NCBI GenBank assembly: GCA_002269645.1 | Contig: NIVC01000168.1 | Coordinates: 1 to 64,000 of the forward strand | Origin: Macrostomum lignano | Lineage: Eukaryota | Reading direction: 5' to 3' | Length of the DNA stretch: 64,000 nt | In this document: one piece after another, positions 5,801 to 58,884 of the stretch | Numbering within the stretch: the stretch's first letter is position 1 | How the letters are laid out: each line of letters begins with the position of its first letter | The notes under the pieces: generated by a model | The model's database searches: none | What the model saw: only the letters and a program-made list of their open reading frames with translations | What the model was told of the DNA's origin: nothing | Program-made: the position numbers and the translations under genes

Positions 5801-5946
5801 GTCTGCCTACCACACTACCTGTCTTTCTGTCTAATGTCTGTTCCTTCTGTCTGCTTTTACAATTCTTATAGGACGTATCCTCATATCTTAAAAACAGCAG
5901 TCTTATTTATATAAAAATCAATACAGCAAAAAACATAAAAATTCGA

Positions 5947-30178: not shown

Positions 30179-32182
30179 ATGTCGAATACTGAACAAGAAG
30201 CAGCCAAATGCATCTCGCGGTTTTGCGAACGGACAGCTGATGGCGAAAGTCCCTTCTCTGTTTTTCCTTTGTGCCAAGAACATCTTGACGAAGATTTGCA
30301 AAGATGTGAAAATCGAAAGGCTGATATTCTTGAAAAGGTCGATAAGCTCTCTTGCAAGTTGGGGAGACAGTCGCTTCAGTTAGAGAAGCAGGCTTTGGCT
30401 ATAGAAATCCAGGAGATTGCCGATATGTTCGATTCCATTCAAGAAAATCTACAGCAGTGGAAAGAAAAACTTATTTCGAGTGTGCAGAACGTGCACGATG
30501 GTGTGTCTGACAGGCTTGAAATTGCATCTGAATCAGACGTATGCGCCAAAGACATAGCTACAGTGTCTAACTCTGGGAATATGCGCGACCTGATACAGCT
30601 TACAGTGTCCATGGAATCCTGGCTAGATGCTGCCACTAGAAGAACTGCTGAATTTGATCAAAAAAGAGCTCAGTTGCGACAGCGACAGAACAATAACTTT
30701 GGTATTCGTTCTGTCGGAGATGTCGCTGCTGGTGTCCAGCACTTGCAAAATTTGTTTGACAGGCATCTGAACGACGTGATGAAGACTTGCTGGCTTGATG
30801 ATGGGGAAACTAAACCAACAGGAATGTTAGAGCATGATTCTGAAATAGGCGATTTAACGAGCAAACCAACACATGTTGCAGCGTGCACTAACACTGCTGG
30901 ATTTTTCGGCGATGCCTCAGGTCGGGTAGTTCGAGCTGACTCAGTTGGGCATGAAATCTCCCAAACGTTGCCACAGCCTTGTATTTTTGTGGCCTTTGAA
31001 AATCAGAGCGCCGACCATCTATTGGTACTGTCACTTGATGGTTCGGTGAGACTTAAATGTCAAGGTGAGTCAGTCAGCGGTCAAACCGCTATCAAAGGAT
31101 TCGAGTGCGACAGTAGACGCCAGCTGTTGTATGTTGGCCGTGCAAATCTTGTTTCTGTCGCTGACTTAAGTGGCACTCTGCTTCATACTATAGACGGTGA
31201 ACGTATCAAGCGTCCTTTTGGTACCGTTCACGGCATGACAGCCAACTCTGATAAGTTGTTTATGCTTTGTTCGACAGACAACGTATTACTGTGGACAGAC
31301 AACGTATTACTGTGTATTAATAAAGATTCACTTCTAGTCGACTCAGAAATCAGATCTAGAGTATTTAACTGTTTAACATCTGCCTCTGTTGGAGTCGGAC
31401 TACATGGCGGTAAAATTATACTATCGGATGCAAAATTGGTGACTCAAGGAAAAACTAGGAAGTACAAAACTTCGGTCTACAAGATTTGCAGTGTCAGTGG
31501 CGAACTAATTCGTTGCGTTAATTTTGTGAGTTCTTTGCCTGATGAAAATAGACACATGTGCCAAGTTTCGGTCTCTAACACTGGCTTCTTATTCTTGTGC
31601 AACTTGGCAACATTAAGAGTTTTATCTGGTTACAATTTTGAGAGTTTAGCTTCTACTTCTCACTCGGAAGCACCAAGCGATCTGGCTCTGCTGCAGTCGC
31701 AGATTATTGTGACAAGTATCGTTACAAATTTATTCTCGAGTCGGTCAAAATTGCACTGTTATAAGTTTCATGGTGAGTTGAAAATTATGCATGTATGTAA
31801 AATCCTCCACGCTGAAAATTTCAAGAACAGAAACCAGAAATTTAGCTGTTATTCATGGCTTTATTAGCTTAATTAGCTCGTAGCACGCTGTGTTTTAATA
31901 ATTAGCGTTTTTACACTTCTGATAAGAAATTTGATAAGAAATTCTTATCAGAAATCTGATAAGAAATTCTTATCAGAAATCTGATAAGAAATTCTTATCA
32001 GAAATCTGATAAGAATGTAACACACGCTTATGCAATTAAAGTAGTCTGTTCATCAAGTCAAGAGCTTCTGTTAACATTTGATTTAATGGAACATTGAATG
32101 ATTTCGAATCTTTGTCTATAAAGTTTCGAAGTTGTAAAGATGGGGATATTGTTGTTTTTATTTATTTCTAATTACAGTTTGA
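30179..32182 (+). CDS. Array gene 1: Zn-finger (B-box-like)/coiled-coil/beta-propeller protein (TRIM-NHL-like, no RING), about 532 aa spliced
   Basis: ORF 30179-31867 with C-x4-C-x15-C-x2-H, a heptad helical region and a propeller-like C-half. Donor GTGAGT at 31773 and acceptor ctaattacag at 32177 give ...CYKFHV*, matching the paralogue ends. The unspliced alternative is 562 aa. Confidence 0.8.
31917..32015. repeat. Tandem array of a 25-bp palindromic unit (TCTGATAAGAA-A-TTCTTATCAGA-AA)
   Basis: tctgat at 31955, 31980 and 32005. The arms are exact reverse complements. Confidence 0.9.
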
Positions 32183-32315
32183 TTCTTTTTTCTTTTTAAG
32201 TGATTCAATTGAGTTATACGAGCCGTATTTATGCTAGCCGTAGCCCGCTATTGTAAATTATACGTTTAAGTGCCCAGGAATAGAAAAAAGTTAGTCGCTG
32301 ATGTGTAGCTGTCTA

Positions 32316-32603
32316 TACTCAGCAACATTGGAAAATTGCCATCAGAAGATTCGGTCTGTGGACCTGTGGTCGCCACTTTTCAAAGTGTAGGTAAAGTCTC
32401 TCAACCTTGCGAGTGACGCAACCTACATGTAGCTACGCCACGCGACAACATTTAGGTCGAGGAATGAAGTGGGGGAATCTCGGTGTGCGAGGATTAGACG
32501 GATTAAAGCTACCCCTCAGTTTTCTCGTATCATTTATTTCAGAATTGTCAAAGATAAATGCTCACTGGCGCATATAGTGACGAGTTTTCAATGTTGCTGA
32601 GTA
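32316..32603. mobile_element. About 290-bp MITE with TACTCAGCAACATTG TIR and TA TSD (Tc1/mariner-like)
   Basis: CTATACTCAGCAACATTG (32313-30) and CAATGTTGCTGAGTATAG (32589-606). A diverged interior homologue lies at about 12440-12590. Confidence 0.75.
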
Positions 32604-32660
32604 TAGCTACTTAATAGTTATTTATTATTCTATACTGGGGTGGGCTATTGGGATATTACA

Positions 32661-32950
32661 GGTTGTAGCTTAGTGGTTAGAGCGTCGGACTTACGACTTG
32701 AAGTCGGGGGGGGGGTTCGATTGTCGACCCACTCAGAACAATTTGTGTCGTTGAGCAAGACGCTTAACTTTGCATTGCTTCATTAACTAATAGCTGTAAA
32801 ATGGATGCCAGCATTAGCTAGGGCAGTTGAAAGTGTGTGTCACCCCCAGTCCTTGGACTGAACAGCCATACGCAGCCTTCAGATGCGCTGCGCAAAAGCT
32901 GTGGCTGAGCTGTCGGTTGCGCATGTGACCCAATTAGGGCAGGTAAAATC
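32661..32950 (+). mobile_element. Full-length tRNA-derived CORE-like SINE
   Basis: A-box TAGCTTAGTGG (32666-76), B-box GGTTCGATT (32714-22), CORE-like GAGCAAGAC...GCTGTAAAATGG, and a 3' region shared with the 27742 copy. Confidence 0.85.
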
Positions 32951-34635
32951 AATTATTAGGGGTATAGGGGTGAAGTTATGCGTGATTATACGAGAGTTGA
33001 CAAAAAAACAAATATACAACTTTAAGCGAGAGGGGCAGAGAGCGCAATCTGTGTCATACTGCCATAAAAGTCAGAAAAAATAATAATTCTAATAATAATA
33101 ATAAATAACAATTATTTTCATCTGGTATATTGTTTATTATCACAGCTATATCAACATCCATCCTCCATTACACAGCCGAGTGTTTTTCGTTTCAAGCCGT
33201 AGCCAGCGGATGAGTTTCACTCTCATGGACAGACGCGGAACAAGCATATTTGAGCACTTACTCGTATTCACGTGTAAGCTAAATACGAGTAACATTTTTA
33301 TTGACTCGGTTGAATTTTTTATCGAAGTGTATACAAACTATACTAATGACCCGTGTCCTTAATGAAGTTTTCGTCTTAATAGTCTTAATTTAAGCTTTGT
33401 GTCCTCTGTTGCCTCCTTATCTTCATTTGTAAAGAATATTAGAATATCCAATTAAGTGAGCCTGTTCAAGTATTTTACTCTTAGCACTGAACTGATCAAA
33501 TAAAAAATAAGCTCAGATATGCAAGCAGATAGCTTAGTAAGTTACTCGTTGCTAGTTAATAAGAAGGTAACGTTCGTTACTTCGTTACCGCTTATCAAAA
33601 AATTACCGATATATTGAAATTATATTAGTTAAAATGATCATAAAGTTTTTTTGGTAGCAGAAAAAGAAACAAAGCTTATTTTCAATTTCAAGTCAACTAA
33701 GGTATCCTATTTTATTTACTGCTCTACAGATTCGATTAAACGTACAGAAAGAAGCTTGTTTTGCCTACTGAAAGCAGCTAGTAGACTTGTTAGCATCGTG
33801 TTTTAATCGATCTCAATCAAACGGAAAAGTAACTCTAAAGTAACAAGTACTTATCGCTACTTAGTTTCTGGCACCGATAATAGAATGACTAAGGTATGCC
33901 ACTCAAAAAATGCGCTCATTTACTCTCTAAGTATAGCGACAATAGTTTTTGCACTTAAACTTGTAAAACTAATAAATTTTACAAGACTTCTGACTTTCTG
34001 TAAGCAGAGTCTCACCAAACCCATTAATTGTCCTAGATTCTAAGTGATTTTTTATGAAATCCTAAAGGTCTTAAAGACTGAAGATAGCGCTCTTGATACC
34101 AGCAAGGCTGATGAAATTGTTACCTTATTTTCCTACTATTGTTTTTGTTGACGTTTATTTTCCTAAGAATTTATGTCATAAAATGTTGCTACTTCGTCCA
34201 TCTCTGATACATGTATACGCGATTGCGATTTTTATGTATCCATTGATATGTTATACTATATGTTATATGTTATATCAACTCAACAGTGACATGAAAAGTT
34301 TTTAGTTCAGACTATTCTGAACATTTTTCTTTAAATTTTATTAGTAAGCATTAGTAGCGGAAAGTTAAGTTGATACTATGCTTAGTTTTGTGTTTATGAT
34401 TTTATTTTATGTCGTAGCTTAACCTTTTCATGTAACGTTTTTTGCGTCTTGCATGCAGCCTTCTACATCTCTGTCAGATTCTTACAATAAATATGCCGCG
34501 CACAGCTGAATGAGTATCTACTAAATTCAATAGAAAAATTAATTGGTTCATTTTTGATGTCATTTTTTTTCATATAAAACTAGTATAATACTCGTAATAA
34601 TAAAAAACTGATTTACCTGACCAACTGCCCGGAAA

Positions 34636-34990
34636 GTGCCCGTCAACATAAGCTCATAAAGTTCATAAGCTCATGAGCCCGAGTAGCCTATGCACAAAAA
34701 TGACACGTCATTCTGCTCACAGTAATACCGGGAAGCTGGGTTTGGCAATAAGAGGGACACAAATTGGACTTAAGAGAACGAGCAAGGGGATGGTTAGGGA
34801 TTATTATGTCAACCTAAGCTCATAAAGTAGAGTCCCTAATTATCCCATTGCTTGTTTTTTCCTATCCCAAGTCGAATTTGCATCGCTCTTTTTGCCAAAC
34901 CTAGCTTCCTAGTGTCATTGTCAGTAGAATATTATTTGTGTACATAACTTACTCGGGCTCCACTTTATGATCCTAAGTTAACAGCCCATT
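34636..34990. mobile_element. Foldback/MITE with about 130-bp imperfect inverted arms
   Basis: gagcccgagta...ggaagctgggtttggcaa (from 34675) mirrors ttgccaaacctagcttcc...tactcgggctc (to 34960). Confidence 0.7.
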
Positions 34991-35428
34991 TAAAGTGCCA
35001 AATGGAAAGATGTGTAAATTTTTATGCAGCGTTCTAGCCTACTTTTCAAGCTTTGAAGTACGTATAATAGGTTTTAGTTCAGCCAATTTGCCAAGAAAAT
35101 GAGCCCACGAGCGTATATTTTGTCCTTATTAGGTATACAATGTATACGCAGTTTGCTAGGGACGATTTAAAGCCGTTCTTTCTACGTTGTTGATATACGA
35201 GCTATTACAACTGCTGTGTAAAGTAATTTCGATGGCATATGATATAGAAAATTCATAAAGCTGCTGAAGCTTCTTAAATCCAAGTAGTGATGTTTCTTTT
35301 GATAGTTATTTTCTCTTTAATATTTGGTAGGATTTGTTTATAGATTTCTCTAGCAACTATTGAACACATATGGGTATTAATTTCAATAAATTGAAGGCTA
35401 ACCGGTTGCTTTAAATTGTTTTCTTTGC

Positions 35429-37027
35429 ATGCCGAAAATGTCAAGTGAACAGCAAATCTGCATTGCTAGATCCTGCGATCGTCCGGCTGAAGACACGAGT
35501 CCATACTCTGGTTTTGCTTTCTGTCGGCAGCATCTTGCCACTGAGATTCAGCGTCTAGAGAAACGACAACAAGAACTGCTAGATAAGCTTGACAAACTTA
35601 GCAACTGTTCAGAAAGACAGGCAATGCGTCTTGGTCAACAAGTTTTGATTGTTGAGATGCAGGAGATTACAGACATGTTTGAAGCTGTTCATAATAGACT
35701 GCACCAGTGGAAGGATCGGTTGGTGTCGCATGTGCAAAAGATCCATGACAATATTGCTACCACGCTTAAGGATGTAGACGAGGCCGATGCTTGTAAGCAG
35801 GAACTAATGCAGGCTCGGGATTCGGGACAGCTGCGCAAAGTGATGGAGCTTGTTGTTTCCATGGAATCATTCGCTGATGACGCTATGGACCGATTGCCAG
35901 AGCATGAAGAACTTCGAGCCGAATTGAAGCAAGATGCTCCCAATCGAATCATTGGCGATGTGTCAGTTGGAGTACAGCAGCTTCAGTTCAAGATCGATCG
36001 ACATTTCACAGATTTGACACAGCACTGTAAGCTTAAAGACATGCCTTCTGATGACTCACCGCAGTGCAATGTGTGCAAGTTCGATAGCACTGTCTCCGAG
36101 CTTCCAAGTGGACCTCGGTACATAACTTTGTGTCAAAACACGAAAAATTATGCTGCCAACCATACAGGAGTGATTATTCCTGCTAAACAAGCTGATAAGA
36201 GAAGTTTAGAACTGCCAGAACAGTGCTTATTTATAGCATTTGATAGGAACAAGGCGGATTATTTGTTGGTGATATCACTAAACAGACGTGATTCTATCGA
36301 TGAGCTAAAGTATCGCTGCGAACAGTTTAACTGGAGCAAGGACATATATGGCATTCATTGCGACAGCAATCGGCAGCAGCTGTTTATAGCTCAGGATCAC
36401 GCTGTGACAGTGACAGACCTGTGTGGCCGAATTGTTAGAGTGGTGACTTCTGATCTGTTCGGTTGGCCTGTTGGAAAGATTTCTGGAATCTCTTGCAACG
36501 GAGACAAAGTTTTTGTGCTAGTGTTGGGCAGCCGCAACCAGAAGGTGCATTCATTTAGCAAGAACTCCGGAAATTTGGAGTCCAGCCTTGATTTAAAAGG
36601 CCATTTTGATGGCGACTTGCGCAAAATCTGCCTGCAAGAGAGCAAGATTTGGCTAGCTGATTGGAAATACCCGAAAGTTTACAAAGTTTGCGGCATTTCT
36701 GGGAAGTTAATTGAAACCATTGATTGCATTGAATCATGTGTTGGTGATATTAAGAAAACGAAATTTTCGCCAATACACATTTGCACTGATGACAGAGGCC
36801 TTTTGTTTGCTAGCCTGATGTCGGCAAATAGCGTAGAAATTTTTGTTGGAGATTCCGTTATTATTAAGTTTCTGGTAGATTTCAACATCGAAGGCGAAGA
36901 AAACGACGACTGCTTTGATCGCCCGGCAGACATGATCATTTTTAACGACGAGACAAAGAACTGCAAGAAGTTAATAGTTTGCGATTATGCTAACGAGAGG
37001 CTCTGTATTTTCTTGCTTTCCACTTAA
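35429..37027 (+). CDS. Array gene 2: B-box-like/coiled-coil/beta-propeller protein, 532 aa, intronless
   Basis: CIARSC...FCRQH, coiled coil, propeller-type blades (IHCDSNRQQLFIA, IWLADW, RPADMII, IVCDYANERLCIF). Confidence 0.88.
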   Translation: MPKMSSEQQICIARSCDRPAEDTSPYSGFAFCRQHLATEIQRLEKRQQELLDKLDKLSNCSERQAMRLGQQVLIVEMQEITDMFEAVHNRLHQWKDRLVSHVQKIHDNIATTLKDVDEADACKQELMQARDSGQLRKVMELVVSMESFADDAMDRLPEHEELRAELKQDAPNRIIGDVSVGVQQLQFKIDRHFTDLTQHCKLKDMPSDDSPQCNVCKFDSTVSELPSGPRYITLCQNTKNYAANHTGVIIPAKQADKRSLELPEQCLFIAFDRNKADYLLVISLNRRDSIDELKYRCEQFNWSKDIYGIHCDSNRQQLFIAQDHAVTVTDLCGRIVRVVTSDLFGWPVGKISGISCNGDKVFVLVLGSRNQKVHSFSKNSGNLESSLDLKGHFDGDLRKICLQESKIWLADWKYPKVYKVCGISGKLIETIDCIESCVGDIKKTKFSPIHICTDDRGLLFASLMSANSVEIFVGDSVIIKFLVDFNIEGEENDDCFDRPADMIIFNDETKNCKKLIVCDYANERLCIFLLST

Positions 37028-37418
37028 ACCGATGGATCAAGCTTAGCTCAAGTAAAGCGGTTATTGACCGAAGAATGTGAATATCGTAACTCGTCGTTTG
37101 TAACAGTTTTCTCAAAACACATTCTTTTACTTGAAGATATATGTATACCTAATATTTCATTTATAAATTTTATAAATATTTATATTAATCTTAATTTTGG
37201 TGCTTGCTTATCTTAAATCTTTTTAATTGCAAGCAGAATGTTCAATCGCCATAGCGTACAGAATTTTTCACGTTTTTTGCTACGCTGCATTTTTACATAT
37301 CTATTGTACTTTCAGTACCGCATGGCAAGTGTTTGTCGTATTTAACAGTTAAAATTTATTTCTTTATTTATTAGTAATCGTTACACATTGTTTTTTGGTT
37401 CCAAGTAGCTCGTACTTA

Positions 37419-38428
37419 TACTCAGCAGCAGTCAAAAGTGCTATCCAACTTCCACTTCTCAATTAAAATTCAACCCACGAGTTTTACGTAACTATGTAGC
37501 CAAGTCAAGGGACAGTAACAGGGTAACAGTCTATCTCAATAGAGTGCTTTATTTTTAGTTTTTTTCGGTAATGTAGGAAAATAGCCAAATCAATTTGCAA
37601 AATTACCGATTCGGAGTTACCAAAGACCAAGTTAAGTGCATCATAGTTAATTTAAGTAGCAGAATCGTTTGGTTCTGTATACTTTTTATGCCCATGTACT
37701 CTGCCAAGCGCAGGCAGTCTTCTCTTTGCTCAAGTGCGTCTTTCAATCGCTGCTTAATCCTCAGCGGATATTCTGGCTCGGGCGGCAGCCATTTACTGTT
37801 GAGTTGGCATTGTCCCACCAGGTTTGGCCTTTTGTATCCATCGTTGTCACTGCGCAACAGATTAGCGCTCTTATTGGCTAATTTACAATTTGAACTGGTG
37901 TTTGCACTTGACTTGGTTAGATAATTAACTGGTTTTTGACCTTGCATTGTTATAGTATCCTCAGGAGAATTTTTATAACAAAAAACATCAGCCCTAAAGG
38001 CCAGCTATATCGCCTAAGATATCTGTATCTCCTTTGAGCTTTGGCATCAACGCCTCCCTTTAGGCCATTATTTAATCCTATTTCTCCCTTCGATCTACCT
38101 TTGGCTTGGCCTACCAAAAACTTCAAAATGAACCTTCTAAATGAAACTTCCAAATATCTCATTAACACTCCCTAAACCGCCACAGCATTTCAGCAATTCC
38201 CCCATAAGCTTTGACATGTCAGGGATCCTCCCTGAGAGCCTCAGCAGATTTGGCTATTTGCCAGATAAACTGAATTTTATGCATTTGGGATGTGGAACTT
38301 AAGTTGGATATAGTACTACGTGACCGAAAATGCCTATAAAGTGTGTACAGTTTTTGTAAGCTATCTAAAGTGCAAAATTTTCGACTTGCGTGAAGGGTAG
38401 CACTAGCACTTTTGACTATTGCTGAATA
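37419..38428. mobile_element. About 1-kb internally decayed DNA transposon, TA TSD
   Basis: TATACTCAGCAGCAGTCAAAAGTGCTA (37417-43) and TAGCACTTTTGACTATTGCTGAATATA (38404-30), 27 bp with about 3 mismatches. No recognisable transposase motif. Confidence 0.7.
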
Positions 38429-39504
38429 TACGCGCCAGAAAATTCAAGATTTTCTGTCGTTGTGGTGCTACTAAACTTAAGACACAATAAGTACGTCGTA
38501 AAATATTAGACTCATTTACTCGCCATATATTTTTGTAGGGTCCCACCTCGAGAACAAACTCTATGTGCCTTGCGTCCTATTGTCATGCAACTATATAGTC
38601 CATTGTGTAATAATTTACGCATGCTCAACATCTGCATCGTAGCTCTCGTCATTGAGGCACAGTGCTTTTCGAAAGCTGTAAATCTTACACTGCGTCCCAT
38701 TGCTAGCCGTGTGTGCAGGCCTAAGTTGTCTCGTCTTGTTTGTGGGGTTGTTTGAAAGGCTCATTTACAGGTATATAACTTTAAGTGAGTTGTGCGTACT
38801 TTTACGCTTAGAATTCACTCGTAATTAAAATAAAGCAAGTGTATCTTGCTTCTCTTGCTTGTATTTTTTGTGTGCTTATTATTGTAAAATTAATTCTTTT
38901 GGCGCTTTTGCAGCATGTTTAATAATAATTTGATAAGTTTAATACCGAGTGAAAAAGTTTGCTTAAAAGTTCGGAATGCTTGTGCTTTTATTTTGATTCA
39001 ACTCCAAACTTCTTTAGCTGTGTATTTCAACATCTAGCTAGGTTATTGCAATATTAAATGAAGTTTTAGTATATGTTTGCCTTTATAATAGATCGTCCAC
39101 TGAAAAGTTGCAAAGATTTACTTTGATACCTTAACTAATTGTAGCTCGTAACTAACTGATTGCTAAATAGAACTTCCAACGTGTGTACTAAACTCGTGTG
39201 CTTCGAACGGTTAAGACCAAAAGGACTAAAAACTGAGAAACTGTTTGTGGCCTATTGCAAGGTCTAAACTCACTTTAAGACTCTAATGTACGAGCTCGTA
39301 GAAGAACGCAGCAGTTCCCTGAAATTGTCTACTAGCTAGCCGCCCTGATCCTTGAGATGAGATACTCGTAGAGCTGGTAGAGTTGCAGTGTGGTGACAAT
39401 ATAAGATGTCGCCTACTGATTACTTGTACTTGCATTGGTTCAGACTAATTACAGAAAAATGATTGAATTTTTGTTTATATGCATGCCGGACGCTAACCGC
39501 AGCC

Positions 39505-41142
39505 ATGTCCAGCGATACCCACCGCATGTGCATTGTCAGATCCTGTTACCAAGCGTCTGATAGCGTGAGTCCTTATTCCGGATTCGCTCTGTGTCAGCAA
39601 CATCTTGGTAGCGATCTTGAACGGCTTGAACAGAGAGAAACTGAAGTTTTAAATAAACTGAATACTGTCGCGGCTAATTCGGAGAAGCAAACTTTTCGAC
39701 TAGAACAGCAAGCGATTCAAATAGAAATGCAAGAAATTGACGACATGTTTGAATCTGTGCAGGCGAGGCTCCAGCTGTGGAAAGAGCAGCTGGTTTCCAG
39801 TGTCCAACAGATCCACGATGCATTTGCTAGTAGGCTGAGAGATGTCGCCGATGCTGAGCATTGTCTGAAAGACATTCATTCGGCACGGTCCAGCGGGAAG
39901 TTGCGCAAAGTGATGAAGCTAATACTATCTGTTGAAAACTTTGCCGATGAAGCCGTCGATAGATCGGCAATTTTTGACGACTTTCGAGCAAGGCTTCGTG
40001 AAATTACTATGGAACGCGATAAGGATAATGACTCTGATGACGATAATGGTGATGAAGATGAAGACGAGTCTTTGAAAACTACTATCTATCGATGCATTGG
40101 TGATGTGTCATCTGAAGTGCAGATGCTACAATCACTGATTGACAAGCATATGCATAGTGTAATGGAGTATTGCCAAATTGACGGCGAATCGCCAGACAAG
40201 CCAGTTTGTCCACCTTTGAAGCAGTCAATTACTCTGCCAGGAGAGCCGCGTTATCTAACTCTGTGTACGAACACAAGTGGATACGTGTGCAACATGAATG
40301 ACTGCGTGGTTTCGCTCAAGTCTGTTGCGAACGCCTCTTATCGAGAATTACCAATGCCCACTATCTTTGTTGCGCTAAGACCAGGTAGCAGTTCTTTACT
40401 GCTGGGCGTTTCTTTTAACATGCGTCGCAAGTTTAAACTAATCTGCGAGAAATTCGACTGGAACAAGGCTATTACCGGCCTTCATTGTGACAATTTGCGT
40501 CAGAGATTATTTTTAGCTCAGGAGCACGCAGTGACAGTGACAGATTTGTGCGGCCAAGTTATTAGAGTAGTTGCTACAAGCCAATTGGGCTTGACTGCAG
40601 GACGAATCTCCGGTATGTCCTGCAATGGTGACAAAGTGTTTGTAATTGTACTGGGAACTAATCAACAAGTGCTTTCGTTTAGTAAGGCCTCTGGAGTGCT
40701 CGAATCCTGCCTCGATGTGAGCGCCTACGGCGAAGGTACATGTGGTCTGCGAAAGCTGTGTCTGCAAGAGGGCAAGATCTGGCTCGCTGACTGGAAGTCA
40801 TCGAAGGTGCTAAAAGTTTGCAGCATCACTGGACAGTTGATTTCAACTACAAAGGCCGATTTTCGGTCTTCTATGACGGAAATAATGCCTCTGCACCTAG
40901 CAAGCGACGATTATGGTCGACTGTACGTCAGCGAGCTGAAGAATCACAGCGTTCAGTCCATTTCAAGCGCAACTGACAATGACGAATTTTTATTTGGAAG
41001 TCCAGGCGAAGCGGGTAATAGCGAAGAAGTCTTCAATAGGCCTGCCGATATAATTGTTTTCAACAGTGAGGCTGTTGGCTACAAGATTCTAGTCGTAGCT
41101 GATACTAACAACATGCGTTTGTGCGCTTTTCGTCTTGTTTAA
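39505..41142 (+). CDS. Array gene 3: B-box-like/coiled-coil/beta-propeller protein, 545 aa, with an acidic linker insertion
   Basis: ATG at 39505 within ORF 39463-41142. Closest to gene 2. Insertion DKDNDSDDDNGDEDEDE. NHL-like end FNRPADIIV...VVADTNNMRLCAF. Confidence 0.88.
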   Translation: MSSDTHRMCIVRSCYQASDSVSPYSGFALCQQHLGSDLERLEQRETEVLNKLNTVAANSEKQTFRLEQQAIQIEMQEIDDMFESVQARLQLWKEQLVSSVQQIHDAFASRLRDVADAEHCLKDIHSARSSGKLRKVMKLILSVENFADEAVDRSAIFDDFRARLREITMERDKDNDSDDDNGDEDEDESLKTTIYRCIGDVSSEVQMLQSLIDKHMHSVMEYCQIDGESPDKPVCPPLKQSITLPGEPRYLTLCTNTSGYVCNMNDCVVSLKSVANASYRELPMPTIFVALRPGSSSLLLGVSFNMRRKFKLICEKFDWNKAITGLHCDNLRQRLFLAQEHAVTVTDLCGQVIRVVATSQLGLTAGRISGMSCNGDKVFVIVLGTNQQVLSFSKASGVLESCLDVSAYGEGTCGLRKLCLQEGKIWLADWKSSKVLKVCSITGQLISTTKADFRSSMTEIMPLHLASDDYGRLYVSELKNHSVQSISSATDNDEFLFGSPGEAGNSEEVFNRPADIIVFNSEAVGYKILVVADTNNMRLCAFRLV

Positions 41143-42061: not shown

Positions 42062-43642
42062 ATGAAGCGCAAATACTGCAGTACAGAAAATCTAAATGAA
42101 AATAAATGCTCGTCTAAATTTTGCAACCATCAAGCTATGGGTATGAGTCCACTTACTGGACTGCCATTCTGTGAACAGCATCTCACAAGTGAACTAGAAA
42201 AGGTCAAAAAGCGTCGAACAGATTTATTAGAAAAACTTGAGACCGTCATCGCTGAGTCTGAGAGACGCTCGCTGCGACTGGAGCAGCAGGCCCTGGCCAC
42301 AGAGTTGCAGGAGGTCGCGGACATGTTCGATGCGGCTCAGGAGCGACTCCAGCAGTGGAGAGACCGGCTGATGTCGCGTGTGCAGGAGGTGCACGATGCA
42401 GTCGCCGAGAGGCTGCGAGACGCGAGCCAAGCAGAAGAGTGCGCCAAGGAGGTGAAGGATGAGAACTCTCAGGTCGGGGACTGTGGAAAGCTGTTTGCCT
42501 CAGTAGAGTCGTGGCTCGACGAGGCCTGCAGTCGGTCGGAGAAGTTCAGCCAGCAACAAGTCGAGCTGCGCAATCGGCAGAGCCGTCAGCTGGACGATCA
42601 GGCAGCAGCAGGTACTGTTTTCCGGTGTGTGGGAGACGTAACAGCAGGTGTTGAGCAGCTGCAGTTCGAGATCGACAGACATCTGACAGGTGTGATGCGG
42701 CAGTGCTGGCTCGATGACAGAGAGGCGTCTCCCGTGCTCCGGCCTTCGGGCTCGATCTCGGATCTGCCGAGCGGTCTTCGGTATCTGGCGCTGTGCAGCA
42801 ACACTCGGGGCTTCGCAGCCGACCCGTCGGGTCGCATAGTTCGAATCGACGCTTCGACTGAGGTGTGCGAGCCTCTGCCTGAACTTTGCGTCATTGTGGC
42901 ATTCCATATAAATTCAGTTGAATATCTACAAATGATTTCACTTGATGGAGGCCTTCGACTTCCATGCGAGATTGACTTGGATTGGAATAGTTTTATATAT
43001 GGTGTCCGGTGTGACAATATTCGCCAAAATTTGTATGTAGCGCAAGGCGAAGTGGTTAGTGTCGCCGATTTGTCTGGTCGTATGCTTCGCCAGATCAGGG
43101 ATACTGAAATTGCTGAAGCTAACTGCGTTATCTGCTCAATCGATTGTAACTCAGATAAACTATTTGTTCTGACGACAACTCCGAATCGACTGGTTGGTTT
43201 TAACAAGGATTCTTGGAAGATTGAACTGTCAGTCGATATTGATTCCGTATGCCCTTCAAGCGGGGTTCACAAGTTATCAATTGTTAACTGCAAGGCTATT
43301 TTATCTTATCAGGGTTGCTCTCGAGTTCTTCGAGTCTGTTGCATAACTGGTCAGCTATTAATGTCGTATCCCGTTGATTATCGCCTTATTAAAAAGATTC
43401 GTCGACCTATGCAAGTTGCTTTTAATAGCCGCGGCCTTCTGTTTGTGAATGAGAACCGCCAATTTGTTCGAGTTTTGACTAACGATGGAGTTTGTCTACA
43501 AGTTCTGTGTAGACCAGATGGTCTAGGCAGACAGCAGTTTAATTGTGCGATGGGTGTCCTGGTCTGCACTGAGACCAGTCCGAACGTGCTTCTTGTTGCC
43601 GATTCTGTTGATGAGAAGCTGTATGTGTTTGATATCGTTTAA
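42062..43642 (+). CDS. Array gene 4: B-box-like/coiled-coil/beta-propeller protein, 526 aa
   Basis: ATG at 42062. CSSKFC...FCEQH. RRPMQVAFNSRGLLFV and QQFNCAMGV are NHL-like. Confidence 0.88.
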   Translation: MKRKYCSTENLNENKCSSKFCNHQAMGMSPLTGLPFCEQHLTSELEKVKKRRTDLLEKLETVIAESERRSLRLEQQALATELQEVADMFDAAQERLQQWRDRLMSRVQEVHDAVAERLRDASQAEECAKEVKDENSQVGDCGKLFASVESWLDEACSRSEKFSQQQVELRNRQSRQLDDQAAAGTVFRCVGDVTAGVEQLQFEIDRHLTGVMRQCWLDDREASPVLRPSGSISDLPSGLRYLALCSNTRGFAADPSGRIVRIDASTEVCEPLPELCVIVAFHINSVEYLQMISLDGGLRLPCEIDLDWNSFIYGVRCDNIRQNLYVAQGEVVSVADLSGRMLRQIRDTEIAEANCVICSIDCNSDKLFVLTTTPNRLVGFNKDSWKIELSVDIDSVCPSSGVHKLSIVNCKAILSYQGCSRVLRVCCITGQLLMSYPVDYRLIKKIRRPMQVAFNSRGLLFVNENRQFVRVLTNDGVCLQVLCRPDGLGRQQFNCAMGVLVCTETSPNVLLVADSVDEKLYVFDIV

Positions 43643-44978
43643 AACTTTTGTAATGTTTCAGTTTTTACAATGTAGTGAGGGTATGGAGCTAAAAATCGAC
43701 ATTTTTCTTATCTAGAGCGATATCCTTAGGTTTTGTGTGAAAAATTCAACATCTATGCTAAAACACATGTGACAACAAGGAGATGGCTACTTACTTTCAA
43801 TAAAACTGACGTAGCTGCCAAACCAATTTTTCATAGAAATTGCATAGAAACTGCCCAGTCCAGGAAGTGTCCGAGTATGCGTCATGCTTGCTTGCTCGTA
43901 CTTACATATACTTGACTTGGCCCGTGCCGTGAGCAGTCCTGACTCCACTTACGAAGTTACATACAAGAGTGTAGAAATACGTTAAGAAAATTAAACGCAA
44001 CCTTTGCTCTAATTTTATAATTTTTAACTTTCAGTATCTTCTTTAAGATTCACAAGTTAGCAAACAGCATTACCCATTTCGCTCCACCTGCCTTTTAATG
44101 TATCTTCCTTGGACCAATACTTTCAATACGACTGTAAATTGATTTTATATTTTAATAGCATGCGATAAAAATTTTTGTTTGCTGTAGTGTAAGCAATGAT
44201 ATTTTTTGTACGGTACACACTATTTTGTAAGTAGGTGGGAATCTTCCAAGTTCCAATATTGCAACAAATGTTCGTTTTAAATGTATTCAGACAAATTTTC
44301 GGCTCTAAAATCTGATGCCTGTGTGTAAATTGATTTGCTAAGTTCTTTTTTTAAGTAGCGTGCAAAAGGCAGCATTATCAATCTATTTCTATTGGTGTAC
44401 AACGAGTACAAATAAAAAGTGTATTCGGCATTCATCGCTCAGCTTCTACGATCAAGTAACGCAATAGAATTATTCCTATTCTATTTGATTTGTTTTCTGA
44501 GCTTAGTATACAGGATTTAGTTTAAACTTTGACTTTAAAATATTCCTTTAATTTTGTAGGGCAAATCCCACACGAACCTCAGAAAACAAAGCTACTGCCT
44601 CGTTCTACTGTTTACTTTTGCTACACTACAAACAAACTTGCATGCAACTCGTCGTTCAGGAAAACGGGTGGGCTAGATTAAAAATTGTGCTTGTAATCAT
44701 TCGCCTGAAAGTGATAAACCCTGGCGTATAATAATTATTATAAAAACCGTCTCTTAAGAAAAAACAATCTGATACGACCTATCTACATTAAAAAAGCATT
44801 TTTGTTTAGGAATGTGTCGGATTACGGATAAATATGCATTTTTTTGCTTGTTAGGCCAAATTAGTTGATTTTTTGGTTGCCATTTTTTTGCTTCATTTTT
44901 GGAGTCTAAAAAGGGCATTTAAGAAAACAAATACCACTTACAAACGTTATAAAATCCCTTTCTGACTAAATAGAAAGG

Positions 44979-46559
44979 ATGACCTCAACCGCCGACTCCA
45001 CCGACTGCTGCTCGTCAAAATTCTGTGGTCAGACGGCAGCCGGTGTAGGCAGACTCACCTGTCTGCCTTTCTGCGAGAAACATCTTCAGGTTGACATGAA
45101 AAGACTGGAAAAGCGGAAAACAGATCTGCTTGAGAGACTTAAGACCGTCATCTCTGAGTCTGAAAGACGCTCGCTCCGACTGGAGCAGCAGGCCCTGGCC
45201 ACAGAGTTGCAGGAGGTCGCGGACATGTTCGATGCAGCTCAGGAGCGACTCCAGCAGTGGAGAGACCGGCTGATGTCGCGTGTGCAGGAGGTGCACGATG
45301 CAGTCGCCGAGAGGCTGCGAGACGCGAGCCAAGCAGAAGAGTGCGCCAAGGAGGTGAAGGATGAGAACTCTCAGGTCGAGGACTGTGGAAAGCTGTTTGC
45401 CTCAGTAGAGTCGTGGCTCGACGAGGCCTGCAGTCAGTCGGAGAAGTTCAGCCAGCAACGAGTCGAGCTGCGCAATCGGCAGAGCCGTCAGTTGGACGAT
45501 CAGGCAGCAGCAGGTAATGTTTTCCGGTGTGTGGGAGACGTAGCAGCAGGTGTTGAGCAGCTGCAGTTCGAGATCGACAGACATCTGACAGGTGTGATGC
45601 GGCAGTGCTGGCTCGATGACAGAGAGGCGTCTCCCGTGCTCCGGCCTTCGGGCTCGATCTCGGATCTGCCGAGCGGTCCTCGGTACCTGGCGCTGTGCAA
45701 CAACACTCGGGGCTTCGCAGCCGACCCGTCGGGTCGCATAGTTCGAGCCGACGCTTCGAATGAGGCGTGCGAGCCCCTGCCTGATGTGTGTGTCATAGCT
45801 AGTTTTGAGCTAAATACTGTAGCTTATTTACTACTAATTTCACTTAAGTCCGATGTTCGACTTCGCTGCGAGACCAATTTGAATTGGGCCCGCCGTATTT
45901 ACGGGCTTCAGTGTGACAGCAAGCGGCAGCATGTGTACGTTGCGCAGGCTCAAGCTGTGACCGTGATCGACCTGTCTGGTACCGTGATTCGCAGTGTCAG
46001 CAAAGCCGATTTTGTTAGCACTGTTGGTCCAATCCGATCCATTGATTCCAGCTCAGACAAATTGTTTGTATTGGCTACTGACCCCTATCGATTATTTTGC
46101 TTCTGCAAAGATTCGTGGCAATGCGAGCTGTTGACTGATTTGTCTGAACTGACTTCTAGTTGCATGGTCAACAGTTTTTCAGTTCATGGTAGCAAAATTC
46201 TTTTGTGCGATAGAACTTGCGGTCGGATTCTACGAGTGTGCGGAATTAGCGGTCAGCTACTAAAGTCATATACCCTATCTGGTGAAGTTGTTGACAGTTT
46301 TTACCGCACACTGCATCTAGTTCTGAGCAACTGTGGCCTGTTATTTGTTAGCGATCTAAAACATCACGTTGTAAAAGTCATGAAGTCCAGCGGACCACAT
46401 ATTCAGACAGTCGGTACTCCGGGTCAGTGCGGTCAGTTAAATCATCAGTTTAATGGGCCTGCCGGTATTGTTATTACCAGTGACATGAGCTCGAATCAAC
46501 TTTTCGTGGCTGATTCAAACAACAAAAGAGTTTGCATTTTTGAGCTTACGTTTATGTGA
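44979..46559 (+). CDS. Array gene 5: B-box-like/coiled-coil/beta-propeller protein, 526 aa
   Basis: Intact ORF. HQFNGPAGIVI...LFVADSNNKRVCIF is an NHL-type blade. Confidence 0.88.
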   Translation: MTSTADSTDCCSSKFCGQTAAGVGRLTCLPFCEKHLQVDMKRLEKRKTDLLERLKTVISESERRSLRLEQQALATELQEVADMFDAAQERLQQWRDRLMSRVQEVHDAVAERLRDASQAEECAKEVKDENSQVEDCGKLFASVESWLDEACSQSEKFSQQRVELRNRQSRQLDDQAAAGNVFRCVGDVAAGVEQLQFEIDRHLTGVMRQCWLDDREASPVLRPSGSISDLPSGPRYLALCNNTRGFAADPSGRIVRADASNEACEPLPDVCVIASFELNTVAYLLLISLKSDVRLRCETNLNWARRIYGLQCDSKRQHVYVAQAQAVTVIDLSGTVIRSVSKADFVSTVGPIRSIDSSSDKLFVLATDPYRLFCFCKDSWQCELLTDLSELTSSCMVNSFSVHGSKILLCDRTCGRILRVCGISGQLLKSYTLSGEVVDSFYRTLHLVLSNCGLLFVSDLKHHVVKVMKSSGPHIQTVGTPGQCGQLNHQFNGPAGIVITSDMSSNQLFVADSNNKRVCIFELTFM

Positions 46560-47259
46560 CTTAACTTGAAGACTTTGATCAATTTATGCAGCTGTTTGAT
46601 AGATCAGCAACAAAGGTGCTCTTGACCTTGCGCTTTCTAGTTGAGAGCTGTGTACAATGTACAGGGTGTCAGAACGCCCACCCTATTTATACATTGCAGC
46701 TTCTAACTGCTTACCCTATTACATTAGGGCGAACTCAAGCCCTGCTGCAATTGTGATGTCCTTATTCAAGCGCCTGGAACAGTTTGTTAATTTTAAGATG
46801 TCTACTGAGATTTAGAATATAAGAATCTGTATTCACTATGTACATTATGTTTTGTATTGAACAAATTTATTTTCATTATTCTCGCATTATTAAGCAAATG
46901 CAAATTCTCAAATTAAAAAACTACAAGCAAGGTAGCTTTTGATAGTCTTTTGCATACCGTCTTTGTTGTCTATTTATCGATTTGTACGAGTGTAGTTGTT
47001 TAAAGTACATTGAACTTCGGTGCTGCAAGACAGGCATTCCATCTAGAGTAGCCATAAGAAATATTGTACGTACACTGGAATTGTTAAAGCAGAACATTTT
47101 TTTTAAAACTACTTAACTGTTTCCGTTTAGTTTAAATTTCCTAGGCTTTACATTTTAACTACTGTCTACAAGATTATTTGTATGTTTGCTTCTTTCGTAC
47201 GGTAATCACACATTTAATCATATACATGTATTTCTCACGTTTCAGGTGACAGATTCAGT

Positions 47260-48861
47260 ATGGAGCCAGAATCCGACAGCTCCTGTGCTGAAAACTTTGA
47301 AAGCTGTACATCAAAGTTCTGCAATCAACGGGTAACGTCGCTCTGCCCACTCACTGGCTTGGGATTCTGTGAGCAGCATTTCAGCGTTGAAATAAAGAAG
47401 CTGGAAAGGAGGAAGACGGATGTTCTAAAGAGACTCGATACGGTCATCTCTGAATCTGAAAGAGGCTCGCTACGACTGGAGCAGCAGGCCCTGGCCACAG
47501 AGTTGCAGGAGGTCGCGGACATGTTCGATGCGGCTCAGGAGCGACTCCAGCAGTGGAGAGACCGGCTGATGTCGCGTGTCCAAGAGGTGCATGATGCAGT
47601 CGCCGAGAGGCTGCAAGACGCGAGCCAAGCAGAGGAGTGCGCCAAGGAGTTGGAAGAGAAATGCAACGATGGATTTTGCAATAAAGACGGCATAAAGCTT
47701 ATCGTCTCCCTAGAGTCGTGGCTCGACGAGGCCTGCAGTCGGTCGGAGAAGTTCAGCCAGCAACGAGTCGAGCTGCGCGATCGGCAGAACCGTCAGCTGG
47801 ACGATCAGGCAGCAGCAGGTACTGTTTTCCGGTGTGTGGGAGACGTAGCAGCAGGTGTTGAGCAGCTGCAGTTCGAGATCGACAGACATCTGACAGGTGT
47901 GATGCGGCAGTGCTGGCTCGATGACAGAGAGGCGTCTCCTGTGCTCCGGCCTTCGGGCTCAATCTCGGATCTGCCGACCAGTCCTTCGTACCTGGCCCTG
48001 TGCAGCAACACTCGGGGCTTCGCAGCCGACCCGTCGGGTCGCATAGTTCGAGCCGACGCTTCGACTGAGGCGTGCGAGCCCCTACCGGATGTGTGTGTTG
48101 CTGTGTCGTTTACTGAAAAGGATGTTGAATATATTCTCCTCATGTCGCTAGATGGTAGCATTCGTTTTCGATGCCAAAGCGAGCTGGATTGGAGCAGCCG
48201 GATATTTGGTCTTCAGTGTGACAGCAGTCGTCAGCAGTTGTATGTCGCCCAGGCTAATGCAGTGACAGCGATAGATTTGTCGGGTCAGGTTGTTCACCTC
48301 ATTACGAGGTCGGATTGCGGTGATGTATTCGGCACCATTTGCTCGGTAGACTGCTCTTTGGATAAAATATTTATTCTCAGTGAAAAACCTTACTGGTTAG
48401 TTGCTTTTAGCAAAGCATCGTTTGAGTGTGAGCTAACGGTAGATATGTCTCCATTCAGTACTGTTGATGGCGTCCGCAAAGTGTCTCTTAAAGGTCATAA
48501 AGCGCTTCTTTGCAACCCATTCAGCGGTCAATTAATTCGAATTTGTGGCATCACTGGTCAGCTGATAATGGCTTACCCCGTCAAATCAAATAATCAAGGA
48601 AGACTTTTTCAACCAGGGCAAGTAACTTTCAATGGTCGTGGCCTGCTGTTTTTTTCTGACTCTCACTGCGTCCGAATCATGACCCATGATGGAGCTATCC
48701 AGCAGACTCTTGGGGCTCCAACTGAACCTGGTTGTGGTGAACGGCAGTTTAAAAATCCTTTTGGTGTCATGACTACCGAAAAGACCAATCCTCACAAACT
48801 GTTCTTGGCTGATGTGGCGAACAATAGAATTTGCGTCTTTGAACTTTTTAATCCTGTTTAA
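47260..48861 (+). CDS. Array gene 6: B-box-like/coiled-coil/beta-propeller protein, 533 aa
   Basis: Intact ORF with an acceptor at about 47245 upstream. LFQPGQVTFNGRG and QFKNPFGV...LFLADVANNRICVF are NHL-type. Confidence 0.88.
   Translation: MEPESDSSCAENFESCTSKFCNQRVTSLCPLTGLGFCEQHFSVEIKKLERRKTDVLKRLDTVISESERGSLRLEQQALATELQEVADMFDAAQERLQQWRDRLMSRVQEVHDAVAERLQDASQAEECAKELEEKCNDGFCNKDGIKLIVSLESWLDEACSRSEKFSQQRVELRDRQNRQLDDQAAAGTVFRCVGDVAAGVEQLQFEIDRHLTGVMRQCWLDDREASPVLRPSGSISDLPTSPSYLALCSNTRGFAADPSGRIVRADASTEACEPLPDVCVAVSFTEKDVEYILLMSLDGSIRFRCQSELDWSSRIFGLQCDSSRQQLYVAQANAVTAIDLSGQVVHLITRSDCGDVFGTICSVDCSLDKIFILSEKPYWLVAFSKASFECELTVDMSPFSTVDGVRKVSLKGHKALLCNPFSGQLIRICGITGQLIMAYPVKSNNQGRLFQPGQVTFNGRGLLFFSDSHCVRIMTHDGAIQQTLGAPTEPGCGERQFKNPFGVMTTEKTNPHKLFLADVANNRICVFELFNPV

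Positions 48862-58825: not shown

Positions 58826-58884
<59 letters not shown>

Follow-up and report, generated by a model that had tools for sequence, protein, structure and literature searches.

A tandem array of RING-less NHL-propeller genes expanded in the flatworm Macrostomum lignano

TRIM-NHL proteins have been studied as regulators of stem cells, the germline and development, and are usually few and conserved. Three TRIM-NHL genes are counted in flies, four in worms and five in mammals (PMC4015489), and the NHL-class TRIMs form part of the conserved, slowly evolving group 1, while the group 2 TRIMs have been reported as absent from invertebrates (PMC2533329). Brat is a RING-less 'incomplete TRIM' of the TRIM-NHL kind, which acts without E3 activity of its own; the RNA-binding members carry an electropositive top surface on their propeller, which is negative in NHL domains that do not bind RNA, such as those of PknD and PAL (PMC4015489). 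TRIM proteins homodimerise in antiparallel fashion through their coiled coil, and association has been described between the paralogues TRIM2 and TRIM3 (PMC9732051).

The window analysed here is a 64-kb stretch of the Macrostomum lignano genome (assembly GCA_002269645.1, contig NIVC01000168.1:1-64000), which contains at 30179-48861 six intact single-exon ORFs on the plus strand, 526-562 aa long and without internal stops. These are g1 (30179..31867, 562 aa), the most divergent paralogue; g2 (35429..37027, 532 aa) and its sister g3 (39505..41142, 545 aa counted from the first ATG), the latter with an acidic insert in its linker; g4 (42062..43642, 526 aa counted from the first ATG); g5 (44979..46559, 526 aa), the protein chosen for modelling; and g6 (47260..48861, 533 aa). 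All six are mutually homologous (tblastn E 1e-77 to 0), and a chance origin is excluded because they are six homologous ORFs of >1.5 kb in DNA of ~40% GC. No extra copies or fragments were found by tblastn across the 64-kb window. An earlier note, made from the letters of this DNA, had described six co-oriented, intact, essentially intronless genes in subgroups 2+3, 4+5+6 and 1, and both points are borne out, the latter by amino acid identities of 44% for g2-g3, 60-64% within g4-g6 and 31-39% between g1 and all others; the lengths it gave, 526-545 aa, hold for g2-g6 and not for g1. The common order of finger, helices and propeller that it had proposed was recovered by alignment, AF2 modelling, Foldseek and profile searches. 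The array is a real family expansion, of a kind of system that is already known. Tandem repeats are abundant in the window as a whole.

Each protein has near its N-terminus a finger with four ligands, C-x4-C-x15-C-x2-H, whose codons were located by regular expressions on six-frame translations, on the plus strand, at 30209-30283 (g1), 35459-35533 (g2), 39529-39603 (g3), 42107-42181 (g4), 45009..45083 (g5) and 47305-47379 (g6); the AF2 model of g5 has a beta unit at residues 10-32. The proteins are RING-less, as had been thought: neither a RING (C3HC4, 8 ligands) nor a B-box2 pattern gave a regular-expression match in six frames of the 64 kb, tblastn with the RING of a RING-bearing relative, P0102, found nothing in the window, and each ATG is preceded by an in-frame stop 3-30 codons away. 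The likeness to a B-box, in contrast, gained no support from the searches. Pfam zf-B_box gave no match at E<=10 with five finger fragments and the full-length proteins, a 26-member finger profile matched no PDB chain, and Foldseek with the finger model of g5 (pLDDT 89) returned nothing significant, MID1 B-box1 standing at rank 16 (E=5.6) in a non-specific list of assorted small zinc fingers. A B-box has 7-8 ligands at two zinc sites; the Cys/His finger, present in all six proteins, has only four that are invariant across 26 diverse family members. On the other side stand its position in P0102, between RING and helices as for a B-box, and a spacing, C-x2/4-C-x15-C-x2-H, which we take to be that of site 1 of the B-box2 consensus. 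The finger is probably what is left of the N-terminal zinc modules, a single four-ligand unit with predicted zinc binding.

Directly after the finger comes H1, a proline-free amphipathic helix of 88 residues, which is followed by two shorter helices. In the AF2 monomer model of g5 the helices span residues 33-123, 134-178 and 185-209, with a pLDDT of 34-59 over the region; the helical region, previously put at about 170 aa, runs over about residues 33-209. The hydrophobic periodicity of H1 is 3.65 residues in all six proteins (z=5.7-7.3; reached by 0/500 shuffles), a value that suits a hendecad-rich coiled coil and equally any long amphipathic helix. Together with the modelled helices it points to a long coiled-coil-type helix in each protein, in keeping with the coiled coil first suggested.

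The C-terminal domain is, on the evidence of both profiles and models, a true NHL-type propeller. Pfam NHL (PF01436) scores 25.9 bits in g3 and 26.0 bits in g5 against a cut-off of 20, and the family profile matched, among PDB chains, Thin (8e-33), TRIM71 (2e-30), TRIM2 (1.5e-22), TRIM3 (4e-21) and Brat (3e-12), bacterial PknD reaching only 2e-8. In the g5 model the propeller occupies residues 221-523 (pLDDT 80-93), and its best Foldseek matches are the NHL domains of Thin, TRIM3, TRIM2 and TRIM71 (target-normalised TM 0.70-0.75). Resemblance to the textbook NHL repeat is confined to the last two blades, and unit-versus-unit hhalign is weak. The model has 26 strands in seven A-B-C units, starting at about residues 234, 271, 307, 352, 397, 447 and 494; the best structural matches are six-bladed and leave ~53 query residues unaligned, as estimated from Foldseek alignment lengths. 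The most conserved family motifs in the alignment are C-x-NT-x-GF, HCDS-x-RQ and VTV-x-DLSG. The b-c and d-a loops, putatively on the top face, are the most variable part (entropy 2.79, versus 2.21 in bottom loops and 2.11 in strands), which is consistent with the diversified recognition family that the earlier note had envisaged.

When 1.84 billion proteins were searched exhaustively with an HMM, ~30 representatives of the family were found, several of them in further tandem arrays; all 27 with a named organism are from M. lignano, and three others come from JGI metagenome contigs. As judged by this search, the family is restricted to M. lignano and a few environmental contigs, as expected for the lineage-specific, expanded group that had been proposed. 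One relative, P0102 (P0102/P0184, Mlig004596), combines in one continuous, intronless genomic ORF of M. lignano a RING (residues 8-48), a finger at residue 95, helices and a propeller. It shares with the array proteins the finger (CSQLNC...CESH, between the C3HC4 RING and the helices), the family-specific propeller motifs and the lack of introns, but it has a RING, and its propeller is interrupted by a long insert of low complexity; its match to the family profile (E=5e-15) covers positions 329-483 only, and its helical region is very divergent. Unlike the array genes, it is a singleton, located between an FHA/STRIPAK-type gene and an Rpb4 gene.

Compared with described systems, the closest propeller relatives are those of class VII (TRIM32/Thin, TRIM71/LIN-41, TRIM2 and TRIM3). 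The order zinc module-coiled coil-NHL is common to this class and the array, and P0102 reproduces the full RING-bearing order; what sets the array proteins apart from the class VII TRIM-NHL ligases is that they lack a RING, a filamin domain and any B-box that Pfam detects. Brat/NCL-1 has the same composition, namely no RING, an N-terminal zinc module, a long coiled coil and a C-terminal NHL propeller. However, where the array proteins have a single four-ligand finger, Brat carries canonical B-boxes that each hold two zinc sites; Brat also lacks the possible seventh blade-like unit and is a conserved gene, whereas the array belongs to a family of lineage-specific members in tandem arrays. In its expansion and clustering the family departs from group 1 NHL-class TRIMs and resembles the vertebrate TRIM-SPRY 'group 2', with tandem clusters, recent paralogues, a common scaffold, a diversified C-terminal recognition domain and species-specific repertoires in both; TRIM-SPRY proteins are, however, vertebrate, with a RING and a PRY/SPRY domain, in place of a flatworm NHL propeller without RING. 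It is otherwise the SPRY-class 'immune' TRIMs that typically expand in tandem like this.

The reading that we favour, and consider moderately probable, is that the array proteins are Macrostomum-restricted TRIM-NHL descendants that have lost the RING and act as dimeric, non-catalytic propeller binders. By analogy with known TRIMs, the long helix and the two shorter ones would form an antiparallel dimer with one propeller at each end, the variable acidic face of the b-c and d-a loops would be the ligand surface, more probably for a protein or peptide than for RNA, and, with no RING, the role would be that of a binder, scaffold or adaptor. That they serve as adaptors or decoys for RING-bearing partners, as was first proposed, is speculative. 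If the favoured reading is right, an NHL-class lineage in the regeneration model M. lignano has lost its RING, kept one finger of its zinc modules and produced ~30 divergent paralogue lineages in tandem arrays.

Among the alternatives, it is possible though unlikely that the array encodes Brat-like post-transcriptional regulators, whose propeller top face would bind specific mRNA motifs and which would repress the translation of their targets or destabilise them, the array diversifying RNA specificity in, say, the germline or stem cells. The architecture of the Brat kind is in line with this, as are the nearest solved propellers, which include the RNA-binding TRIM71, Brat and Mei-P26. Against it, in each of the six proteins the putative top loops have a net charge between -1 and -10, which makes the top face acidic, approximately so given that top and bottom loops were assigned from secondary structure and not from 3-D coordinates, and with net charges of -3 to +7 (pI 5.8-8.7) the propellers as a whole are close to neutral. 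At the level of sequence, acidic loops stand where Brat and other RNA-binding TRIM-NHL proteins have their electropositive top surface (PMC4015489), and the three conserved family motifs are absent from Brat and LIN-41.

Selection was measured between two copies of the locus, NIVC01000168.1 and NIVC01002962.1. These share a near-identical tract of ~6 kb at 33183..39150 (identical runs of 1881 and 4084 nt with one difference between them), which takes in g2, 100% identical in the second locus, and its intergenic flanks; the neighbouring DNA differs by 1-6%. The comparison of the copies gave no sign of positive selection: g3-g6 have a dN/dS of 0.06-0.6, and g1 one of ~1. The most constrained copy is g3 (0.06 in the propeller, 0.18 in the helical part), and the propeller most divergent between loci is that of g6 (73 nt differences, dN 0.071). 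In g1, the propeller has a dN/dS of 1.14 and a degenerate last blade, followed by a 30-aa tail that a 2-nt indel shifts relative to the second locus; the gene also contains a perfect in-frame 21-bp tandem duplication (31273..31314, plus strand, TDNVLLW/TDNVLLC; period 21, 2.0 copies, 100% match). The constraint on g1 is probably relaxed, and the gene seems to be on its way to losing its function. The second-locus g4 has a 2-bp deletion.

These values bear on a distinctly unlikely explanation, namely a diversifying, immune or defence-like family, an invertebrate parallel to the TRIM-SPRY clusters of vertebrates, that would use variable propellers to recognise pathogen or foreign molecules and signal via RING partners such as Mlig004596. 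It would account for a large, tandem, lineage-specific family that exceeds the three to five TRIM-NHL genes of flies, worms and mammals (PMC4015489), for variability concentrated in the putative binding loops, for the strong difference of the g6 propeller between loci and for the presence in M. lignano of a relative with a RING, and the clustered, fast-evolving vertebrate TRIM groups are tied to innate immunity (PMC2533329). However, gene-wide dN/dS never exceeds 1 in the otherwise functional-looking genes, a search for expression or infection data turned up none, and the helical part of P0102 is too divergent for sequence to suggest pairing.

Within g4-g6, a central tract of ~680 bp shows 90-100% nucleotide identity, versus 50-60% in the flanks. 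On the plus strand it lies at 42207..42882 in g4, 95.9% identical to its partner at 45109..45784 in g5, and at 47433..48080 in g6, where identity to g4/g5 is ~91% and a divergent patch occupies about residues 120-140. The dS is 0.07-0.23 in the centre and 1.2-1.4 elsewhere (for g4, 0.074 versus 1.42 in the propeller), and GC3 is 0.66-0.69 inside and 0.38-0.44 outside (0.69 versus 0.38 in g4). The g4 tract spans the distal two-thirds of H1 and then H2 and H3, followed by the linker and first blade unit; the finger and the remaining blades of g4-g6 diverge outside it. The second locus shows the same mosaic, and the only further array with one, P0007-P0009, shows a milder form. GC-biased gene conversion thus homogenises the helical core and first blade of g4-g6, an observation that is new here, and the sharply bounded tract is a clean natural case of concerted evolution limited to certain domains, with the predicted dimerisation core inside it and the recognition domain outside. 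It predicts heterodimerisation: since their helical cores are almost identical, g4-g6 can probably heterodimerise, with mixed pairs of different propellers. The tract may also reflect recombination mechanics without functional meaning.

A more elaborate account, which we hold to be very doubtful, is combinatorial recognition, in which conversion would be kept up, or at least tolerated, for holding the dimer cores of g4-g6 interchangeable, the single-zinc finger would be a new, minimal B-box derivative, the NHL propeller would be seven-bladed and the family would be a flatworm-specific counterpart of the vertebrate TRIM-SPRY clusters. If it were true, free g4/g5/g6 heterodimers would multiply bivalent propeller pairs with differing acidic faces and no E3 of their own. 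Highly improbable is the view that these are largely redundant or decaying duplicates with little function today, thrown up by local duplication in a neopolyploid genome rich in repeats; it would fit the state of g1, the deletion in the second-locus g4 and the repeat-rich window, but not six of six frames intact despite saturated or near-saturated paralogue dS (at least 1.2), purifying selection on g3-g6, zinc ligands and many propeller motifs invariant over ~27 divergent members, or the existence of transcript-based models.

The public annotation is transcript-based and includes models for the locus, whose existence is the sole evidence for expression of g1-g6. Two of these models, Mlig003511.g1 and Mlig030150.g3, are chimeric because of the near-identical conversion tract of g4-g6, which will also mis-assign RNA-seq reads and matters for quantifying g4-g6. 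The sequence tttctcacgtttcAG, 14 nt upstream of the g6 ATG, resembles a textbook splice acceptor.

The forward strand between 30179 and 48861 carries an array of six long ORFs, g1 (30179-31867, 562 aa), g2 (35429-37027, 532 aa), g3 (39505-41142, 545 aa counted from the first ATG), g4 (42062-43642, 526 aa, likewise counted from the first ATG), g5 (44979-46559, 526 aa), and g6 (47260-48861, 533 aa). With each protein as the query, tblastn against the whole window recovered all six loci at E values from 1e-77 to 0, and no seventh copy beyond them. Pairwise identity is about 44% between g2 and g3 and 60-64% among g4-g6, while g1 shares 31-39% with all others. The ORFs, the tblastn matches, and these identities bear out the six-gene array and the subgroups (g1, g2+g3, and g4+g5+g6) proposed in the earlier note; its description of the genes needs revision in the size of g1, which lies outside the 526-545 aa given there, and in the Cys/His finger, which has only four conserved ligands. 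The reading frame ahead of each ATG is closed by a stop at a distance of 3-30 codons, a signal of the type AATAAA or ATTAAA follows the stop codon of each gene after 150-450 nt, and splice-acceptor-like sites precede g1, g2, g5, and g6. The coding regions had also been described as essentially intronless, and indeed all family ORFs examined, including that of P0102 (Mlig004596), a RING-bearing M. lignano relative, are devoid of introns, which is unusual for this genome, where an average Mlig_3_7 gene has 4.9 introns (PMC5730564). This unusual feature would fit a family that arose by retroposition and was then duplicated in tandem. Shared promoters or duplicated flanks were ruled out, since non-coding similarity is absent between the paralogue flanks.

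When 1.84 billion representative proteins were searched exhaustively with an HMM, 35 matched at E<=1e-30. About 30 representatives align through the finger, the helices, and the propeller, and the long tail under the family matches consists of generic NHL-repeat proteins that align in the last blades only. All 27 family representatives that could be traced to a named organism come from M. lignano, as do all close database matches, in agreement with the proposal of a lineage-specific family; three further representatives lie on short contigs from JGI metagenomes. Consecutive accessions on the same contigs reveal at least three more tandem arrays, with 2-3 near-identical copies of each (PAA87157-59, PAA76656-58, PAA86708-11, PAA52242-44, PAA84856-58, and PAA66511-12), and in the database proteins P0179 and P0180 two adjoining family genes have been fused by read-through, thus pointing to another adjacent pair. 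A metagenome scan with a single protein yielded no confirmed loci. In the part of the PMC7336406 supplement that was covered, Mlig018798.g5, to judge from its ID apparently the counterpart of g1 in a second copy of the locus, is assigned to orthogroup OG0000008, which also contains many transcripts of M. spirale and M. pusillum. As a lead only, this suggests relatives in other Macrostomum species; the other family IDs were not found in that part of the supplement, and annotation versions differ.

The C-terminal domain is an NHL-type propeller, as the propeller-like repeats noticed earlier had indicated, and Pfam, the family profile, AF2, and Foldseek all point the same way. Pfam NHL scores above its cut-off in g3 and g5, and a 27-member family profile matches the NHL domains of Thin/TRIM32 (8e-33), TRIM71 (2e-30), TRIM2 (1.5e-22), TRIM3 (4e-21), and Brat (3e-12), with bacterial PknD (2e-8) well below the TRIM-NHL scores. 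The full-length AF2 model of g5 (mean pLDDT 68.9) comprises a small beta unit (residues 10-32, pLDDT about 80), helices at 33-123, 134-178, and 185-209 that have low confidence as a monomer, and an all-beta domain at 221-523 (pLDDT 80-93), for which the top Foldseek ranks are the NHL domains of Thin, TRIM3, TRIM2, and TRIM71 with target-normalised TM scores of 0.70-0.75. Only the last two blades have the appearance of textbook NHL repeats, and the best-conserved motifs, C-x-NT-x-GF, HCDS-x-RQ-x-L-x-VAQ, and VTV-x-DLSG, are family-specific. In the model, 26 strands form seven A-B-C(-D) units, the first two of which also resemble compact NHL repeats, so a seventh blade unit is possible; the closest structural matches, however, have six blades, and profile comparisons between the units showed weak similarity. 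The first helix, H1, has 88 proline-free residues with a hydrophobic periodicity of 3.65 residues in all six proteins (z=5.7-7.3; none of 500 shuffles as strong), which is compatible with a coiled coil rich in hendecads but also with a long amphipathic helix.

At the N-terminus, the only invariant pattern in g1-g6 and in 26 diverse family members is C-x4-C-x15-C-x2-H, with C-x2-C replacing C-x4-C in a few of them. The family had been called RING-less, and correctly so: no RING or B-box2 pattern occurs in any frame of the 64-kb window, which together with the lack of a tblastn match rules out a hidden RING exon. The further suggestion that the finger is B-box-like was not borne out by the sequence and fold searches. 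Pfam zf-B_box gave nothing at E<=10, the finger profile had zero matches in PDB, and Foldseek with a confident model of g5 residues 1-75 folded separately (pLDDT 89) returned nothing significant (best E=2), the list being a mix of zf-HIT, AN1, TtuA, piggyBac, PHD, and MYND fingers with the MID1 B-box1 at rank 16. The strongest argument for a B-box origin is positional. P0102 has a C3HC4 RING at residues 8-48, matched end to end by nine Pfam RING models (best 9e-6, slightly below the curated cut-offs) and also listed as PF15227 in the precomputed annotation of the protein collection; it is followed in a single continuous genomic ORF by the family finger at residue 95, the helices, and the propeller. 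Lying between the RING and the helices, the finger thus occupies the exact B-box position of a TRIM. Its C-x2/4-C-x15-C-x2-H spacing is that of zinc site 1 in the B-box2 consensus, a lead rather than a test. A search with P0102 revealed no bridging homologues. UniProt names such as 'RING-type', 'B box-type', and 'TRIM2' on some family members were rejected as a sign of extra domains, since the named proteins contain none: in P0165 nothing precedes the finger, P0179 and P0180 are the fusions described above, and P0027 and P0030 lack a Pfam B-box. We infer that automatic profile rules, triggered by the finger, assigned these names.

The GenBank locus of one matching M. lignano protein agrees at 100% with window 32056-56559, coordinate for coordinate, which identifies the window as bases 1-64000 of contig NIVC01000168.1 (GCA_002269645.1). 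Contig NIVC01002962.1 carries the entire locus a second time, at 94-98.5% nucleotide identity and between the same neighbours, with an AIRS-domain gene on the upstream side and a BAR-PH-ArfGAP-Ank-SH3 gene on the downstream side; the array is therefore older than the split of the two haplotypes or homeologues. Between the copies, dN/dS is 0.06-0.18 for g3, 0.26-0.61 for g4, and about 0.4 for g5, the g6 propeller has dN of 0.071 and dS of 0.147, and no sign of gene-wide positive selection was detected. For g1, the propeller dN/dS is 1.14 and the tail is shifted by a 2-nt indel. A short ORF at 33180-33362 (+) serves as a 3' exon in the GenBank model of the second-locus g1 (P0003); since it is unlike an NHL blade, the true 3' end of g1 is uncertain. 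The two copies of g2 are identical, but they lie inside an identical tract of ~6 kb (33183-39150) that includes intergenic DNA, which rules out selection as the cause. In the second-locus g4, a 2-bp deletion (AG) at CDS nt 375 (about 22980 in locus record L003) shifts the frame, so that what is left is an ORF of 414 aa starting at an internal Met; the deletion may truly inactivate the gene or may be an indel error of long-read sequencing.

The array paralogues themselves are old, with propeller dS of 1.2-1.4 and dN/dS of about 0.33 among g4-g6 and saturated dS between subgroups. Against this background, g4-g6 share a central tract with sharp borders and 90-100% nucleotide identity (42207-42882 in g4, 45109-45784 in g5, and 47433-48080 in g6; g5 residues about 55-260), whereas the finger side and blades 2 onward are just 50-60% identical. 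Within the tract dS falls to 0.07-0.23, versus 1.2-1.4 in the propellers, and GC3 rises to 0.66-0.69, versus 0.38-0.44 in the same propellers and 0.43-0.45 in the same region of g1-g3. Judged by its base composition and substitutions, the tract bears the signature of GC-biased gene conversion and not of protein-level constraint; purifying selection alone was ruled out because synonymous sites are homogenised too. An assembly polishing artefact is unlikely, since the tracts are 90-98% rather than 100% identical and the independent second locus carries the same mosaic. The array encoding P0007-P0009 has a milder mosaic, limited to H1 (64-78% identity versus 37-44% in the propeller).

Two existing gene models were misled by this near-identical tract. 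P0001 (Mlig003511.g1) spans g4 to g5 (4.5 kb, 42062-46559) and P0002 (Mlig030150.g3) spans g4' to g6' of the second locus (6.7 kb, 10001-16736 in record L002); both are chimeric, with the 5' part of one paralogue joined inside the tract to the 3' part of another. A recombinant five-gene haplotype was ruled out for P0001, whose span is exactly g4-g5 of the same contig, and likewise for P0002 at the second locus. Because of such models, the annotation under-counts the array genes and RNA-seq quantification over the tract will be ambiguous. The Mlig_3_7 annotation is based on transcript evidence only, namely RNA-seq data assembled with the genome as guide and divided at trans-splice and poly(A) sites (PMC5730564), and since transcript-derived models exist at both locus copies, the array genes are transcribed. 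The array gene IDs are absent from the full texts and supplements of the M. lignano papers searched for tissue or condition expression data, and exact-protein look-ups of g5, g2, and g3 gave no RNA-derived contigs.

With strands assigned from the g5 model and the top face defined as the b-c and d-a loops (PMC4015489), the top loops are the most variable part of the propeller (entropy 2.79, versus 2.21 for bottom loops and 2.11 for strands), and g4-g6 are all three identical at 25% of top-loop positions versus 40-42% elsewhere. These putative top loops are net acidic in all six proteins (-1 to -10), the whole propellers being near neutral and Cys-rich (12-17 Cys each). By analogy with TRIM proteins, we consider the family most likely to be non-catalytic, dimeric binding proteins, in which the long helix and the two shorter helices would dimerise, as the TRIM coiled coil does in antiparallel homodimers (PMC9732051), and the two propellers would bind protein or peptide ligands through the variable acidic faces of their loops. 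The near-identity of the putative dimerisation core may also allow g4-g6 to heterodimerise, for which the association of the paralogues TRIM2 and TRIM3 is a precedent (PMC9732051). A rival reading is that the family may serve in immune-type recognition, and another that it may regulate RNA in the manner of Brat. Redundancy or decay is plausible only for g1. RNA regulation of the Brat type is disfavoured, at the level of a sequence approximation, because the putative top loops are acidic whereas the top face of RNA-binding TRIM-NHL domains is electropositive (PMC4015489).

The family almost certainly descends from a TRIM-NHL protein and may work like one. Since it falls short of the tripartite motif in two defining traits, RING and B-box, we classify it as a RING-less family derived from TRIM-NHL proteins rather than as a bona fide TRIM. 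Loss of the RING alone is not new, since Brat is already known as a RING-less TRIM-NHL protein; what is new is the minimal four-ligand finger, the variable face with its putative acidic charge, a blade unit that may be the seventh, concerted evolution limited to one domain region, and the scale and tandem layout of an NHL-class expansion. TRIM-NHL proteins number three in flies, four in worms, and five in mammals (PMC4015489), and TRIMs of the NHL class fall into the conserved 'group 1', clustered lineage-specific expansion being typical of the SPRY 'group 2' (PMC2533329).

The upstream neighbour of the array (~20481-27718, with an exon-like ORF at 27257-27718) is AIR-synthase-related, with an AIRS_C match of 2e-8 in the window ORF; its second-locus model contains PF00586 and PF02769 in 286 aa, and it adjoins the array in both copies. 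The downstream neighbour (~52400-64000, +; 20345-24504 onward in record L001) is multi-exonic, is annotated as a 1261-aa BAR-PH-ArfGAP-Ank-SH3 (ASAP-type) protein, and likewise adjoins the array in both copies. Opposite its span, a 769-aa minus-strand ORF at 60653-62962 has no Pfam match, and the second locus has an 875-aa minus-strand gene model at the matching place. The g1-g2 spacer contains two palindromic (self-reverse-complementary) stretches (31901-32031 and 34675-34960), and a 140-bp element recurs with 77% identity upstream (28080-28219) and downstream (32717-32865) of g1; these may be remnants of small mobile elements. Dense minisatellites, whose periods range from 17 to 152 bp and whose strands differ strongly in composition, occur within 1-11000 (13-364, 2265-3322, 4195-5782, 6592-7810, 8494-8839, 9414-9851, and 10257-10888), with further arrays at 26541-27030 and 29615-29889. 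A 593-aa ORF at 4133-5914 with a weak ANATO-like Cys pattern is a repeat artefact of the 57-bp array at 4195-5782 and not a gene. A (TAGA)n microsatellite of about 35 copies lies at 58780-58918.
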